Positions 12,110-24,048 of a stretch of DNA of 64,000 bases are shown one piece after another. Both the position numbers and the translations under genes were made by a program. This DNA comes from Octopus sinensis. Its lineage: Eukaryota. The stretch is from the NCBI RefSeq assembly GCF_006345805.1, contig NC_043002.1, positions 67,332,001 through 67,396,000 on the forward strand, in the 5' to 3' direction. Each line of letters begins with the position of its first letter. The first letter of the stretch is position 1. The notes beneath the pieces are model-generated. The model did no database searches. It saw only the letters and a list, made by a program, of their open reading frames with translations, and was not told the origin of the DNA.

Positions 12110-12729
12110 TCACCCATTAAACGTGGTCACTCCTACTCTATTAGGAGGTCTTCTTTCTTCCCCCACTAATTCATCATCAGAAATAGGACGGTTGATAGCT
12201 TTGTCGAAATAATACAAACGATCAATGAAAGTGCTGCCTTCATTTCCAGTCATAAGTCCATCCACCGATTCTATGCCACTATCGTTTCGACCAGATTTAT
12301 TTATTTTACCCGAAGGTAAATTGAGAGGCTTCTTTGACGACTCATCTGTCTTAGCTTTGTTAATCTCTTTCATATTAGCCCTCTTCTGTTTCATCTTCTT
12401 GCTATCTGGATGATAAGGGAAACATAGCCTTGGCACCGCCATTAACAGTATCACCGTGTAAAGTAGGAGGAAGCTGAGGCAACTTAAACAGGCGACAATT
12501 ATCAATCCGGTGGATGAGAAAAGCTTTTCTTTCTCGGAGCAAGCTACTTTTGTAACCGGTTGAATTCCGGAAGCTTCAGATTGAGACTTATTCTCGGCAG
12601 ATCGTTTATGAGTATCAGAAAGCAAAAGTGTTTCTTTTTGTAGATCGACAGCCATAACTGGAGAATCAGGAGACTGAAGGATGTCATACTGGAGAGTTGT
12701 TTGGTCTTGGATTTTCGCGAGGCTCAACG
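12110..12729 (-). CDS. Terminal coding exon of a single-pass type I membrane protein (Ser/Thr-rich stalk, TM helix, about 105-aa cytoplasmic tail)
   Basis: Strong acceptor ttttctcttcttctttctaacag| at 12731/12730, phase 1; 205 open codons of non-repetitive sequence; [27 protein letters not shown] followed by KKMKQKR; stop TGA at 12112-12110. Confidence 0.85.
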
Positions 12730-12765
12730 CTGTTAGAAAGAAGAAGAGAAAATAGTAAATAACAA

Positions 12766-14648
12766 ATATATATATATATATTATATATATATATATATAT
12801 ATATATATATATATATAATATATATATATATATATATACATACATATAAATACATATATACACATATATACATATATATACATATATACATATATATACA
12901 TATATACATATATATACATATACATATATACATATATATACATACATATATATACATACATATATATACATACATATATGTACATATATACATACACATA
13001 TACATACATATATATACAAATATACATACATATATATACATATACATACATATATATACATACATATATATACATATATACATACATATATATACATATA
13101 TACATACATATATATACATATATACATACATATATACATACATATATACATACATATATATATACATATATATACATATATACATATATATACATATATA
13201 CATATACATATATATACATACATATATGTACATATATACATATATATACATATATATATGTATATATGTATATATATATATATATATATATATGTACATA
13301 CATATATATACATACATATATATACATATATACATACATATATATACATATATACATACATATATACATACACGTATATATACATATATATTCATATATA
13401 CATATATATACATATATATATATATACATATATATACATACATATATGTACATATATACATACATATATACATACATATATATACAAATATACATACATA
13501 TATATACATATACATACATATATATCCTGCCCGCAGCGATTTAGTTTTTTACCAGGTGGTGCTATTAAGTTAGACATGGCCTGGGCCAATAATGGCCGAA
13601 AAGTATCAAAGTATATATACATATATACATATACATACATATACATATACATACATATATATACATATATATATATACATATATACATACATATATATAT
13701 ATACATATATACATACATATATATACATATATAATACATATATATACATACATATATGTACATATATACATACACATATACATACATATATATACAAATA
13801 TACATACATATATATACATATACATACATATATATACATACATATATATACATATACATACATACATATATATACATATATACATACATATATACATACA
13901 TATATACTACATATATATATACATATATATACATACATATACATATATATAACATATATACATATACATAGATATACATACATATATGTACATATATACA
14001 TATATATATACATATATATATATGTATATATGTATATAATATATATATATATATATATATATGTACATACATATATATACATACATATATATACATATAT
14101 ACATACATATATATACATATATACATACATATATACATACACGTATATATACATATATATTCATATATACATATATATACATATATATATATATACATAT
14201 ATATACATACATATATGTACATATATACATACATATATACATACATATATATACAAATATACATACATATATATACATATACATACATATATATCCTGCC
14301 CGCAGCGATTTAGTTTTTTACCAGGTGGTGCTATTAAGTTAGACATGGCCTGGGCCAATAATGGCCGAAAAGTATCAAAGTATATATACATATATACATA
14401 TACATACATATACATATACATACATATATATACATATATATATATACATATATACATACATATATATATATACATATATACATACATATATATACATATA
14501 TACATACATATATACATACATATATATATACATATATACATACATATACACACACACACACACACACACACACACACACACACACACACACCACACACAC
14601 ACACATATATATATATATATATAATATATATATATATATATATATATA
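12766..14648. repeat. Compound (TA)n/(TACA)n array with a 769-bp tandem duplication and an embedded 86-bp unique unit
   Basis: Identical unit cctgcccgcagc...gtatcaaag at 13526-13611 and 14295-14380. Confidence 0.93.
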
Positions 14649-15014
14649 AACAAAATGAAGTTGTAAGGTACCGCACGTGTGGAAATATATATGAAAGAAG
14701 GTTTGAAAATGCAATTTTAAAGATATTTATTGACTTGACCGGTTTCTCATTTTTAGAAAAAGATTGTCAAAAGTTAAATGTAAAGCTTTGTAAAAGCTTT
14801 GTTGTGTTAAGTACTGGTTGTCACAAAGGTATTAAAATACATATATACATTCTTTGATAATAATAAGAAAATGTTAAAAATAGTTTACAGGAAAGTATTT
14901 AAGAAAATATTCAACAAAAAAGTATTAGGAGATACGAACGCCCGCGCGCGTGAACAAGGCACTTGTGCAAAGTGAGATGAAGCCCGGTATATTGCATTAC
15001 TTACGGTTGAAATA

Positions 15015-15432
15015 CAAAGAAAGGAAGAATGAAAGAAAGAAAGAAAGAAAGAAAGAAGGACGGAAAGAAAGAAGGCAGGAAGGAAGGAAAGAAAGAAAGA
15101 AAGAATGAAGGAAGGAAAGAAAGAAAGAAAGAAAGAACGGAAGGAAGAAGGAAGAAGGAAAGAAAGGAATGAGCGAACAAAAGGAAAAATGGAAAAGAAA
15201 GGATGGAAAAAAGAGAGAAAGGAAGGAAGGAAGAAAGAAAGAAAGGAAAAGAAGGATAGGAAAAGAAAGGGGAAAAGGAAAAAAATTAAGTAAAAGAACA
15301 AATTCAAATAACACATAATCGTGTATGTATGTATGTATGTATGTATGTATGTATGTATGTATGTATGTATGTATGTACGTACGTACGTACGTACGTATGT
15401 ATGTATGTATGTATGTATGTATGTATGTATGT
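15015..15432. repeat. (GAAA/GGAA)n purine tract and (GTAT)n
   Basis: Read directly. Confidence 0.92.
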
Positions 15433-16149
15433 CTGAACATGTATGTGTGTATGTATGTATACTTACATATATATATATACATACATATTTAATTATGTAT
15501 ACACACACACCCTCACACACATTCACGCCCACACGCACACATATACTGCAACATATTAGTAACACATTCTTGGGTGGATACGAAATTGTGAAATCTTTTG
15601 CCAAGATATGGAAAGCAAAATTGAATGCGCGTATGGGACATGGGATGACTGGTTGTGGCCTCATTATAAAACACAATTAAGTAAGCTTAGATGAAGACAT
15701 TTCTCATCAGTGATCATATTAAACAGACTTCTATTAATAGCATAGTGCTATTTTTTTACTATTTCGTTATGTCATTTTGTTGTATCTCGGACGGGTCATT
15801 ATGCCCATAATGATCACACACACTGGTTCTGTTTCACTTCTTTTATTATTTTTTTTTTGTCAATTAATTAACCATTTAATCAATTAAAAAATCAATTGTT
15901 TGATTAATTGTTCGGTCAATCAATCACTCTGCTAGGTTTATCAAAGCCCTTATGTCTCAATTCGTGACCACATCAATGACATGTCCTTTCTACTCCAGAT
16001 CTGCTTCGAGTCTTTCTGCCCGAGAATTGGTTTATAAAACATTAGTTACATCATCTTACGCATATTTCATTAACATAAGGTTATTGTGTGATTACTTTTC
16101 GTGTAACACTCTTTTCCGCAGCTCATCTTTCTAACCGAGCTGCAGTTCT

Positions 16150-21919: not shown

Positions 21920-22190
21920 AATATGTAGATTAATAATAACATTAACATCAGTTTCTTGGACTAGCCATAAAATCTGTATATTTGGGGGATGTACTTTGGA
22001 GATTTTCAAGGATGTTAGTAATGTAAGCTAAATGCTTCCAATAAAGATTTGAAACTGTGTTTTGGTTTCAGTTTATCAGAAGCTGAACACTTAACCTCCA
22101 ACACTTACCACAAGGTTCAGAGTCAAAAATAGTACTAATAATTAGTGACTCATACTCAAGATTCACAAAAGATATTAGTATACGATAAAC

Positions 22191-22468
22191 GTCGCCCTTT
22201 TCAAGCCTAGCCAGGCTCATGGGCCCGGTTTCCTGGTTTCTGTGGCGTATGTGTTCTCCCCAGCTTGACGGGACGCCAACCCATCGCAGCGTTACTCAAG
22301 AAACAGGAAGAGAGAGTGAGAGAAAGTTGTGGCGAAAGAGCACAACAGGAGTCGTCACCACCCCCTGCCGGAGCCTCGTGGAGCTTTTAGGTATTTTCGC
22401 TCAATAAACACACACAACGCCCGGTCTGAGAATCGAAACCGCGATCCTCCGGGTCATTGCGCCTCCAC
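22191..22468 (-). mobile_element. tRNA-derived SINE family D head with tail type 1
   Basis: Head gtggaggcgcaatg...gtttcgattctcagaccggg; tail gaaaccaggaaaccgggcccatgagcctggctaggc. Confidence 0.85.
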
Positions 22469-22499
22469 GATATTAGTATAGCAATGCCAATAAAATTAA

Positions 22500-23833
22500 C
22501 ACGTTAACCACCACGGCCTGTTACTGAACCTTACCGATGACGTCGAGTATTTCTGGCTAGCGAAATTTTTTAATTGCATACAACCAATCAGAGCTCACCT
22601 TGAAAATCCACATACTGTGTACTATAGTACAGCCAGTCAGGCATAGAATTGTGTAATGCAATCTGTGAGTACAGCATAGCAGGTCTTACATAAGTTCCAC
22701 ATTCCACCCCCACCTCCATCCTCATAGATTAATTGAGCACCATCTCTGAATGGAGCTAACACTAGGTATCTATGCTCAGACTGAGATTAGTGATACTGCA
22801 GGTACCCGCAGTACGACACAACACCATATTCTTTTACTTGTTTCAGTCATTTGACTGCGGCCATGCTGGAGCACCGCCTTTAGTCGAGCAAATCGACAAC
22901 AGAACTTATTCTTTGTAAGCCTAGTACTTATTCTATCGGTCTCTCTTGCCGAACCGCTAAGTGACGGGGACGTAAACACACCAGCATCGGTTGTCAAGCG
23001 ATGTTGGGGGACAAACACAGACACACACACACACACACACACACACACACATATATATATATATATATATATATATAGAACGGGCTTCTTTCAGTTTCCG
23101 CCTACTAAATCCACTCACAAGGCTTTGGTCGGCTCGAGGCTATAGTAGAAGACACTTGCCCAAGGTGCCACGCAGTAAGACTGAACCCGGAACCATGTGG
23201 TTGGTAAGCAAGCTACTTACCACACAACCACTCCTGATTACGATGTTTCCAGATCAACACCAACATTTTATGTTAGGAATGTACAAAATCAGTCAAAAAA
23301 TTAGGAACCTACACTCATTTACATTTTCTAGTAAATTACGCAAACTGGCAACACTTCATCCATGAGCAGCGTCTACGAGCAGCACTTCATTCACTTTATA
23401 CACTAAATTTCACATTTGTCACCCCTATTAACCCGTTTAAAACTGTTAGATTTTGCTATAACGCACATTTTCCACATAATTTAACCAGAGTATTCTCATG
23501 ACTAGGTGGGCACAAGTTTGATAGTTGAGGTCTGATTGGCTGTATGCAAACGAGTTCTTAACTGGGGTCCGGAACTCTCGTGGGAAAAAATTGCTTCCGG
23601 CTACATAGCATATTGCTTAATTGCACAGAAATGTAATTTTTAAGAATTTTTACAATATTTCATAATTAAACTTTAATATTTAGCACTCATGTTATTTAAC
23701 TATTCTCGAAACCATGTCAAAGATACAGACTAAAATATTTTCTCAAATTATGTAAGTAAACAACCGGTGGGGAATATGGCAGTTGTGTGAAGTTAGCAAT
23801 CAAACGCTGGTGGTAATTGTGGCAGTTAACGTG
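22500..23833. mobile_element. piggyBac-like non-autonomous element containing a SINE A insertion
   Basis: TTAA|cacgttaaccaccac ... gtggcagttaacgtg|TTAG; internal inverted motif catacaaccaatcag / ctgattggctgtatg. Confidence 0.6.
22829..23236 (-). mobile_element. SINE family A, full length
   Basis: Family match. Confidence 0.88.
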
Positions 23834-23981
23834 TTAGTGTTAATGGCACCGAAAAGGAGGACAAACATATATACAGTAGTTAGGAAACATATACAGTAGC
23901 TACGAAACATATACATATACATATAACATATACAGGAGCTAGGAAACAACAACTACAACATGGATTAGCGATGGCATTTAC

Positions 23982-24048
23982 CTTGAGAATTATCCAACAG
24001 CACAGCGTGGGTCAAGATAAGACAGAGAGCAACAGGTTGCAAAGCCAT
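23982..24048 (-). CDS. First coding exon, signal peptide MALQPVALCLILTHAVLLDNSQ
   Basis: ATG in strong context (aataATGg) with an upstream in-frame TGA at 24099-24097; hydrophobic h-region; donor caag|gtaaat at 23981, phase 1, matching the acceptor at 12730. Confidence 0.72.

Follow-up and report, generated by a model that had tools for sequence, protein, structure and literature searches.

A stretch of 64,000 nucleotides from the genome of Octopus sinensis (contig NC_043002.1, positions 67,332,001 to 67,396,000; the whole stretch is called the window below) contains, in the region 8145-24048 of its minus strand, what by sequence and annotation is the protein-coding gene LOC115212938, composed of three coding exons and encoding a predicted type I single-pass membrane protein of 251 amino acids. 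As far as the searches made could reach, the protein belongs to a family restricted to coleoid cephalopods, and the gene model and the description of this family, taken together, can be given with high confidence. The tail of the protein contains the hexapeptide DSGIES, a candidate phosphodegron for beta-TrCP. The best explanation as a whole, covering the gene, its family and the function inferred for it, is put forward with moderate confidence.

Over 25.9 kb around the gene, the window coincides exactly with a part of O. sinensis chromosome CM016864.1 (assembly GCA_006345805.1; locus L002), where the coding sequence spans 15,904 bp, equal to the window span 24048 to 8145. The RefSeq protein XP_029637644.1 (LOC115212938, "uncharacterized protein", 251 amino acids) is 100% identical to all 228 residues obtained by splicing the first two exons, and a tblastn search of its residues 1-22 against the window returned exon 1 with 100% identity. 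Because the gene is already present in RefSeq as LOC115212938, it is not cryptic, as the initial annotation, made from the letters alone, had described it; it is annotated in Octopus vulgaris and Argonauta hians as well. The literature search found no paper naming LOC115212938 or its accessions, and the database protein has no function or domain attached to it. The coding part of the gene is arranged as follows.

23982..24048, minus strand: coding exon 1, 67 nt, ending in phase 1; encodes M1-Q22 and the first base of A23 (predicted signal peptide)
12730..23981, minus strand: intron 1, 11.25 kb, gt...ag, rich in microsatellite and SINE-like (short interspersed nuclear element) repeats
12114..12729, minus strand: coding exon 2, 616 nt, phase 1 in and phase 2 out; encodes A23-G228 (ectodomain stalk, transmembrane helix, most of the tail)
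12108..12113, minus strand: intron 2 donor gtgagt, into which TGA 12112-12110 falls
8218..12113, minus strand: intron 2, 3.9 kb
8145..8217, minus strand: coding exon 3, last base of G228, then KRPRSQSVAIMPSRYQSGIYIEL and the stop TGA 8147-8145

Translation begins at ATG 24048-24046 of the minus strand, in the good Kozak context aaataATGG (surrounding minus-strand sequence cacaaataATGGCTTTG). The donor of exon 1 is caag/gtaaat at 23982/23981, in phase 1 (a slash marks the splice boundary here and below), and exon 2 begins in phase 1 at base 12729, behind the acceptor ttctttctaacag/CG with its strong polypyrimidine tract (ttctcttcttctttctaacag/CG). Both boundaries had been read from the letters exactly in this way, and the resulting splice agrees with the RefSeq model. 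Joining the two exons yields MALQPVALCLILTHAVLLDNSQA/LSLAKIQ..., in which the residues S-Q-A at positions -3 to -1 span the junction, as had been predicted. It was also rightly observed that a list of open reading frames hides the gene: exon 2 lies inside a 469-aa pseudo-frame, 12110..13519, which starts in an AT-rich microsatellite, and exon 1, only 22 codons long, falls below the length at which frames are listed. Reading splice phases de novo can thus recover a real short first exon located 11 kb from the next one.

The 3' end fared differently. The 228 residues of the proposed two-exon product are identical to the RefSeq sequence, but the third coding exon, 8217-8145, had been missed, and the true length is 251 amino acids. 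The codon TGA 12112-12110, taken for the end of the gene at 12110, is part of the consensus donor AAT GG/gtgagt; the coding part of exon 2 ends at 12114, and the gene extends about 4 kb further. XP_029637644.1 runs on past ...TTFNG with KRPRSQSVAIMPSRYQSGIYIEL, which brings it to 251 amino acids; the 23 added codons occupy 8217-8148, downstream of the acceptor ttgtcag/C (ttctatttgtcag/C). Beyond exon 3, an AATAAA at 7664 may mark a nearby poly(A) site. In general, a phase-2 exon standing before GTAAGT or GTGAGT reads xxG TAA or xxG TGA, and the end of an open reading frame at such a place is therefore no evidence of a last exon. The same false immediate stop is found at the end of exon 2 in Argonauta (GG/gtaagt) and in a related genomic contig described below, L003 (CC/gtaagt). 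The trap is transferable, as a phase-2 exon before GTRAGT always appears to end in a stop codon, and in this case it concealed the exon that carries the most conserved C-terminal motifs.

The orthologous protein of O. vulgaris (CAI9724317.1, 251 amino acids) differs from that of O. sinensis by one substitution. Argonauta hians encodes a 258-aa ortholog (GAB1598456.1, locus L001) with 69% identity and the same three coding exons and phases; its 67-nt coding exon 1 ends in AAG/gtaaac, exon 2 is bounded by the acceptor aacag/CC and the donor GG/gtaagt, and exon 3 follows the acceptor ttgcag/T. When the window was compared with the Argonauta locus, only exon 2 (72% nucleotide identity) and exon 3 (85.7%) gave colinear matches in single copy, the remaining matches being multi-copy short repeats. 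The 23 residues encoded by exon 3 are identical in Octopus and Argonauta. The ratio of nonsynonymous to synonymous substitution rates (dN/dS) between the two, estimated by the Nei-Gojobori method, is 0.12 overall with a saturated dS of about 1.7, and it varies by region, from 0.011 for residues 96-137, comprising the transmembrane and juxtamembrane segments, through 0.10 in the tail to 0.17-0.29 in the ectodomain and signal peptide. This pattern rules out a pseudogene.

The predicted protein begins with a hydrophobic core at residues 6-18 followed by small-x-small at positions -3 to -1 (SQA in Octopus, AQA in Argonauta), and by rules of thumb it would carry a cleavable signal peptide of about 23 residues. 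The ectodomain, expected to be Ser/Thr-rich and about 73 residues long, measures 72 residues with 22% Ser/Thr and a single Cys. Hydrophobic residues 96-122 form the only such segment in the protein, in agreement with the single transmembrane helix and basic patch recognised initially; the following 26 residues contain seven K/R against two D/E, so that the positive-inside rule holds. The AlphaFold2 model contains one confident helix, 96-125, with a predicted local distance difference test score (pLDDT) of 81-85 in this block and a mean pLDDT of 50 for the whole protein; the ectodomain and the 129-aa cytoplasmic tail are essentially disordered in it (pLDDT <50). The features of the protein are listed below.

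12599..12607, minus strand: dibasic K64-R65-S66; R-S invariant in all homologs, a possible proprotein-convertase site
12539..12541, minus strand: C86, the sole Cys of the mature octopod ectodomain, invariant, 10 residues before the transmembrane helix
12431..12511, minus strand: predicted transmembrane helix T96-P122 (Kyte-Doolittle up to 2.67, AlphaFold2 helix 96-125, dN/dS 0.011 for residues 96-137)
12266..12283, minus strand: DSGIES, D172-S177, candidate beta-TrCP phosphodegron inside the invariant block G169-L181
8196..8213, minus strand: RPRSQS, R230-S235, fitting the conserved R-x-R-S-x-S; RSESVP in decapodiforms
8148..8159, minus strand: C-terminal YIEL-COOH; YVKV or YVKI in decapodiforms

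Invariance was judged across Octopus, Argonauta and three decapodiform-type lineages. The transmembrane and juxtamembrane stretch is the most conserved part of the protein, near-invariant across lineages; the other invariant positions are R65-S66, then P80, K83 and C86 in the stalk, the block around DSGIES, D..L..F, and the C-terminal R.RS.SV...P.RYQS.IY. The motif LYYF, to which attention had been drawn, is present at residues 194-197, but it is not conserved as such, being replaced by LYDF in Argonauta and LEEF in cuttlefish-type proteins; only D-[KR]-L-x-x-F is conserved in this region. C86 is a candidate for an intermolecular disulfide, and a disulfide-linked dimer seems plausible. The pattern R-x-R-S-x-S is a motif of basophilic (AGC-type) kinases, RSxSxP is the mode-1 motif of 14-3-3 proteins, Y-x-x-hydrophobic is a tyrosine sorting signal, and a hydrophobic-x-hydrophobic end is typical of PDZ-type C-termini. 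Accordingly named candidates are the decapodiform RSESVP, which matches the 14-3-3 mode-1 motif, and YIEL-COOH, which would fit both the sorting signal and the PDZ-type ending.

The extent of the family was assessed by an exhaustive HMMER search with an octopod profile over 1.84 billion representatives (E <= 0.001). It yielded three clusters only, namely the query's own, P0003 (E 3.7e-29) and P0004 (E 2.7e-25), and a profile word search added a fourth, P0006. The three HMMER clusters, defined at 50% identity, consist of cephalopod proteins or of unnamed transcripts and contigs, which bears out the suggestion that the protein is lineage-specific. P0003 and its full-length form P0005 (381 amino acids) come from a 1.4-kb transcript contig, and P0004 is a large exon on a 434-kb genomic contig (L003, ERZ21867824:ctg122760l). 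P0006, 386 amino acids long, occurs in 12 nearly identical variants, carried by over 100 contigs of transcript size, and the exact sequence is encoded in run SRR20545812, a larval RNA-seq data set of Sepia esculenta (PMC10466719). The sequence likeness suggests that the lineages behind P0003/P0005 and L003 are decapodiform cephalopods too. No annotated protein from another mollusc or any other animal appeared in these searches.

As had been stated, the protein belongs to no recognisable family: the octopus, Argonauta and long-form proteins gave nothing above threshold against Pfam-A (best E 0.013-0.03), and there was no significant PDB match. The sub-threshold Pfam matches, to OATP, Cadherin_C_2, PRIMA1 and Calcyon, are mostly driven by the transmembrane segment and were rejected as compositional. 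The PDB profile matches to TMEM9 (E 0.08) and embigin (E 0.18) involve the transmembrane segment only and are not significant.

The cuttlefish- and squid-type orthologs (P0005, P0006, L003) are about 40% identical to the octopus protein over the common part, sharing with it the stalk Cys, the transmembrane/juxtamembrane segment, the block G169-L181, DKLxxF, an acidic SDED patch and the C-terminal RxRSxSV..P.RYQS.IY. Only the cuttlefish-type proteins possess an N-terminal immunoglobulin (Ig)-like domain, encoded by two extra exons, and an RKKR furin-type site. Their layout comprises a signal peptide, the Ig-like domain of about 105 amino acids, the furin-type site R/K-K-K-R↓S (the arrow marks the expected cut), a spacer ending in the invariant (K/R)R↓S, the stalk with the invariant Cys, the transmembrane helix and the tail. 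The assignment of the domain as Ig-like rests on the hallmarks ELxCxIS ... GPFW ... DLGxYxCV, on matches, below threshold, of three of the four sequences to five Pfam models of the Ig clan (E 0.0015-0.06), and on an AlphaFold2 model of the long form in which this region is all-beta, at low confidence (mean pLDDT 39). In L003, two exons encode the domain, the first running from phase 1 to phase 2 and the second from phase 2 to phase 1. The large exon of L003, orthologous to octopus exon 2, is like it entered in phase 1 and left in phase 2, and the last exon agrees in phase as well. The messenger RNA contig L004, from a related species, reads through ...NIP/RRGRSESV... at the point where L003 has an 8.9-kb intron with the donor CC/gtaagt.

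The octopus protein lacks the Ig domain and is, in that respect, not a member of the Ig superfamily. No relic Ig exons were found, by tblastn or with a hidden Markov model (HMM) of the Ig region run over a six-frame translation, in the octopus window, intron 1 included, or in the Argonauta locus. As the Ig exon pair is symmetric (phase 1 to 1), its absence preserves the reading frame, and the octopod signal-peptide exon splices directly to the large exon. Loss of the Ig exons in octopods seems more likely than their gain in decapodiforms. A search of the 4 kb that precede the first Ig exon in L003 did not reveal the signal-peptide exon of the decapodiform gene, which probably lies further upstream. 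A likeness between the octopod junction LLDNSQALSL and the decapodiform Ig start LLLSRSNQSLAL was considered; about 6 of 17 positions match, with an intron mid-way, and it was left as a coincidence. A profile word search with the alignment of the Ig region and ectodomain missed its own source proteins, and its null result carries no weight. In L003, around 4120-4180, the first Ig exon needs a +1 frame shift after GPFW to reach ...LADGSWFVSNTR/gtaagt, which reflects an indel introduced in assembly or else a genuine lesion of this copy.

The hexapeptide DSGIES was correctly located in the tail by the initial annotation (12283-12266, residues 172-177), and the check proposed there, its conservation, gave a clear answer: the motif and its flanks are invariant in every homolog, in Octopus, Argonauta and the three decapodiform-type lineages alike. 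The consensus of beta-TrCP substrates is DpSGXX(X)pS, and a review table of such substrates includes human IkB-epsilon (NFKBIE), with the degron SQYDSGIESL, and PRLR, with DSGRGS (PMC10317156). The octopus motif agrees with the pattern D-S-G-x-x(-x)-S/T, and its six residues are identical to those of the IkB-epsilon degron. It is located C-terminal of the transmembrane helix, on the predicted cytosolic side, in a region where pLDDT is below 50 for residues 151-188 except 172; disorder of this kind is what one expects around short linear motifs. With an invariant Arg at -3 and a Glu at +3, S173 would suit basophilic or CK2-type kinases. In shuffled tails, DSGxxS occurs in 0.6%. From these sequence features, regulated turnover via beta-TrCP is a plausible hypothesis, though somewhat less likely than not.

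Several known proteins offer a comparison. IFNAR1 and GHR have a beta-TrCP phosphodegron in the tail, and the octopus protein resembles IFNAR1, PRLR and GHR in its type I topology and in carrying DSGxxS within a cytoplasmic tail that is disordered. Unlike these cytokine receptors, it has a 72-residue disordered ectodomain, no fibronectin-III or cytokine-receptor ectodomain (no Pfam match), no recognisable Box1/Box2 and no homology to them. With IkB-epsilon it shares DSGIES and a hydrophobic residue after it, as a short linear motif only and with no homology; IkB-epsilon is a soluble ankyrin-repeat protein, unlike the membrane protein of the octopus. DAP10, DAP12, FcR-gamma, CD3-zeta and basigin/embigin typically combine an unusually conserved transmembrane helix with one membrane-proximal Cys and an ectodomain that is small or dispensable; the octopus protein resembles them in logic only. 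Unlike those adaptors, it has no charged transmembrane residue, no immunoreceptor tyrosine-based activation motif (ITAM), no YxNM and no significant similarity to them.

Since the ectodomain is dispensable and the transmembrane/juxtamembrane and tail motifs are under very strong purifying selection, the working part of the protein would be the helix together with a phospho-regulated tail. We infer from the sequence features that the signal peptide is cleaved, that the tail is phosphorylated and bound by beta-TrCP, that the protein is turned over and that it has a partner in the membrane. The membrane-embedded helix probably contacts a partner membrane protein, or itself. An IKK-like kinase, or another acidophilic or basophilic one, would phosphorylate S173 and S177 of DSGIES; SCF(beta-TrCP) would bind the doubly phosphorylated motif and ubiquitinate nearby lysines, and the protein would then be internalised and degraded, as IFNAR1, PRLR and GHR are. 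The C-terminal RxRSxS and YxxPhi-COOH motifs might give extra trafficking control. In its most specific form, this proposal makes the protein a member of a coleoid-specific orphan family with a transmembrane core and an IkB-type IKK/beta-TrCP switch in the tail, of which octopods keep a ligand-independent stub, and which would act as a turnover-regulated accessory or adaptor subunit, possibly in NF-kB-type signalling; so detailed a proposal is unlikely to be right in every part.

A number of observations weigh against the reading as a whole. Hundreds of proteins per proteome are expected to contain DSGxxS by chance, so that the weight rests on the invariance and location of the motif and not on its occurrence. 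The tail has no +4 Ser/Thr ladder for priming by GSK3, and use as a degron would therefore need direct IKK-like phosphorylation. The invariant block, at 13 residues, exceeds what beta-TrCP needs, and another binding partner could explain it. The n-region of the presumed signal peptide contains no basic residue, and only 8 of 22 residues of exon 1 are identical between Octopus and Argonauta. The octopus splice junctions rest on annotation and conservation: no octopus transcript contig is recorded that encodes this exact protein, against more than 100 cuttlefish contigs, and the Argonauta annotation bears the O. sinensis locus name, so that it may reflect homology transfer and may not be independent. 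No O. bimaculoides ortholog was among the search matches. In a comparison that covers octopods and decapodiforms, a gain of the Ig domain in decapodiforms is a less likely alternative to its loss in octopods.

Some of these points bear on rival explanations of the gene model. The main product could be the 228-aa protein ending at TGA 12110, produced, for example, by retention of intron 2: the frame stops at 12112-12110 if the donor is unused, and intron retention would give such a product in all three genomes examined. The TGA, however, is inside the consensus GG/gtgagt, and 3.9 kb downstream stands a 23-aa exon with a good acceptor, 100% conserved as protein in Argonauta and recognisable in cuttlefish, which is used by the RefSeq and O. 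vulgaris annotations and in decapodiform messenger RNA contigs; we regard this rival as very improbable. It is even harder to believe that octopods retain only the decaying remains of a gene that lost its Ig exons, be it a transcribed pseudogene or an annotation artefact. The absence of the Ig exons, the want of an exact-match octopus transcript contig and the failure to see the gene among O. bimaculoides proteins are what such a remnant would leave, but the reading frame is undamaged in each of O. sinensis, O. vulgaris and A. hians, splice sites have been conserved along with their phases, and the dN/dS of 0.12 stands against a saturated dS.

Other rivals accept the gene and differ about its function. 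The block G169-L181 could be a docking or phosphorylation site for another partner, the protein being an accessory or adaptor subunit that binds a channel, transporter or receptor through its transmembrane helix and dimerises by a disulfide through its Cys. Constraint in the transmembrane/juxtamembrane segment, invariant across coleoids and with a dN/dS of 0.011, far exceeds that required of a passive anchor; octopods do without the Ig ectodomain, the only Cys of their mature ectodomain is invariant, the conserved block is longer than a six-residue degron, and the weak PDB profile matches fall on the transmembrane segments of TMEM9 and embigin, at E values that are not significant. Against this, the helix has no charged residue, the tail has neither ITAM nor YxNM, no accessory-subunit family shows significant similarity, and at the core of the block stands a full match to the canonical degron, with the same residues as a proven one. 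An accessory subunit of this kind seems to us rather unlikely, although it is compatible with the degron, and both may apply. A different proposal sees a membrane-tethered precursor, from which a convertase would release the ectodomain at (K/R)R↓S, and in the long form also at RKKR↓S, with the shed fragment or the stub being active. R65-S66 is invariant and preceded by K or R in all lineages, and in the long forms the Ig domain is followed directly by a canonical R-K-K-R or K-K-K-R, but dibasic pairs are common, and the octopod N-terminal fragment of about 42 amino acids evolves fast (dN/dS 0.17, low identity), which speaks against a conserved peptide ligand. We consider the precursor improbable, and the preferred reading remains that of a single-pass membrane protein whose tail contains a candidate beta-TrCP degron.

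The surroundings of the gene are rich in repeats. A degenerate AT/TATG-type microsatellite of 1.5 kb (12766-14294, 76% matches) begins about 40 bp from the exon 2 acceptor and yields many overlapping fake open reading frames on both strands, with YIYIYM-type translations; the repeats 13554-13618 and 14323-14387 reveal a duplicated block of about 770 bp. One short repeat family, of about 97-113 bp, is found at 4237-4349, 8667-8763, 19396-19492, 23080-23174, 27454-27550 and 31457-31558, and another, of about 140 bp, at 17309-17448, 20308-20447, 29321-29460 and 46622-46760. Both have many copies in the Argonauta hians locus, with 72-89% identity, and are SINE-like and common to the two octopod lineages. 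A 107-aa open reading frame inside intron 2 (10539-10862, plus strand) contains ...RGRTRTRWLDNI... and has no Pfam match at E <= 0.01; we take it to resemble the C-terminal tail of an RTE/LINE-type (long interspersed nuclear element) element.

About 1.2 kb upstream of the start codon, a 149-aa open reading frame on the plus strand (25200-25649) encodes a Pif1 helicase 2B domain (E 3.9e-9) and is probably a relic of a Helitron-type transposon. Further away, on the minus strand, a GC-rich block at 33435-42661 (about 0.50 against about 0.38 in its surroundings) comprises two degenerate, frame-broken copies of a retrotransposon without long terminal repeats (non-LTR, LINE-type), with an endonuclease/exonuclease/phosphatase domain at 35737-36618 (E 2.9e-8) and a reverse transcriptase domain at 39094-39825 (E 5.5e-21). 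Near-duplicate open reading frame segments occur in both copies, and an assembly gap of 100 N (33444-33543) stands at the low-coordinate end. ARAGORN found no transfer RNA-like gene in the window.

What is known already is the annotation of the gene, and an uncharacterised single-pass membrane protein with short linear motifs is of a familiar kind. LOC115212938 is one of many uncharacterised cephalopod-restricted genes, with unusually clear testable features, and the octopods without the Ig ectodomain and the cuttlefish with it make up a natural experiment. If the degron works, it would be an invertebrate case of receptor-type turnover control in a lineage-specific protein, one that would overturn nothing already established.

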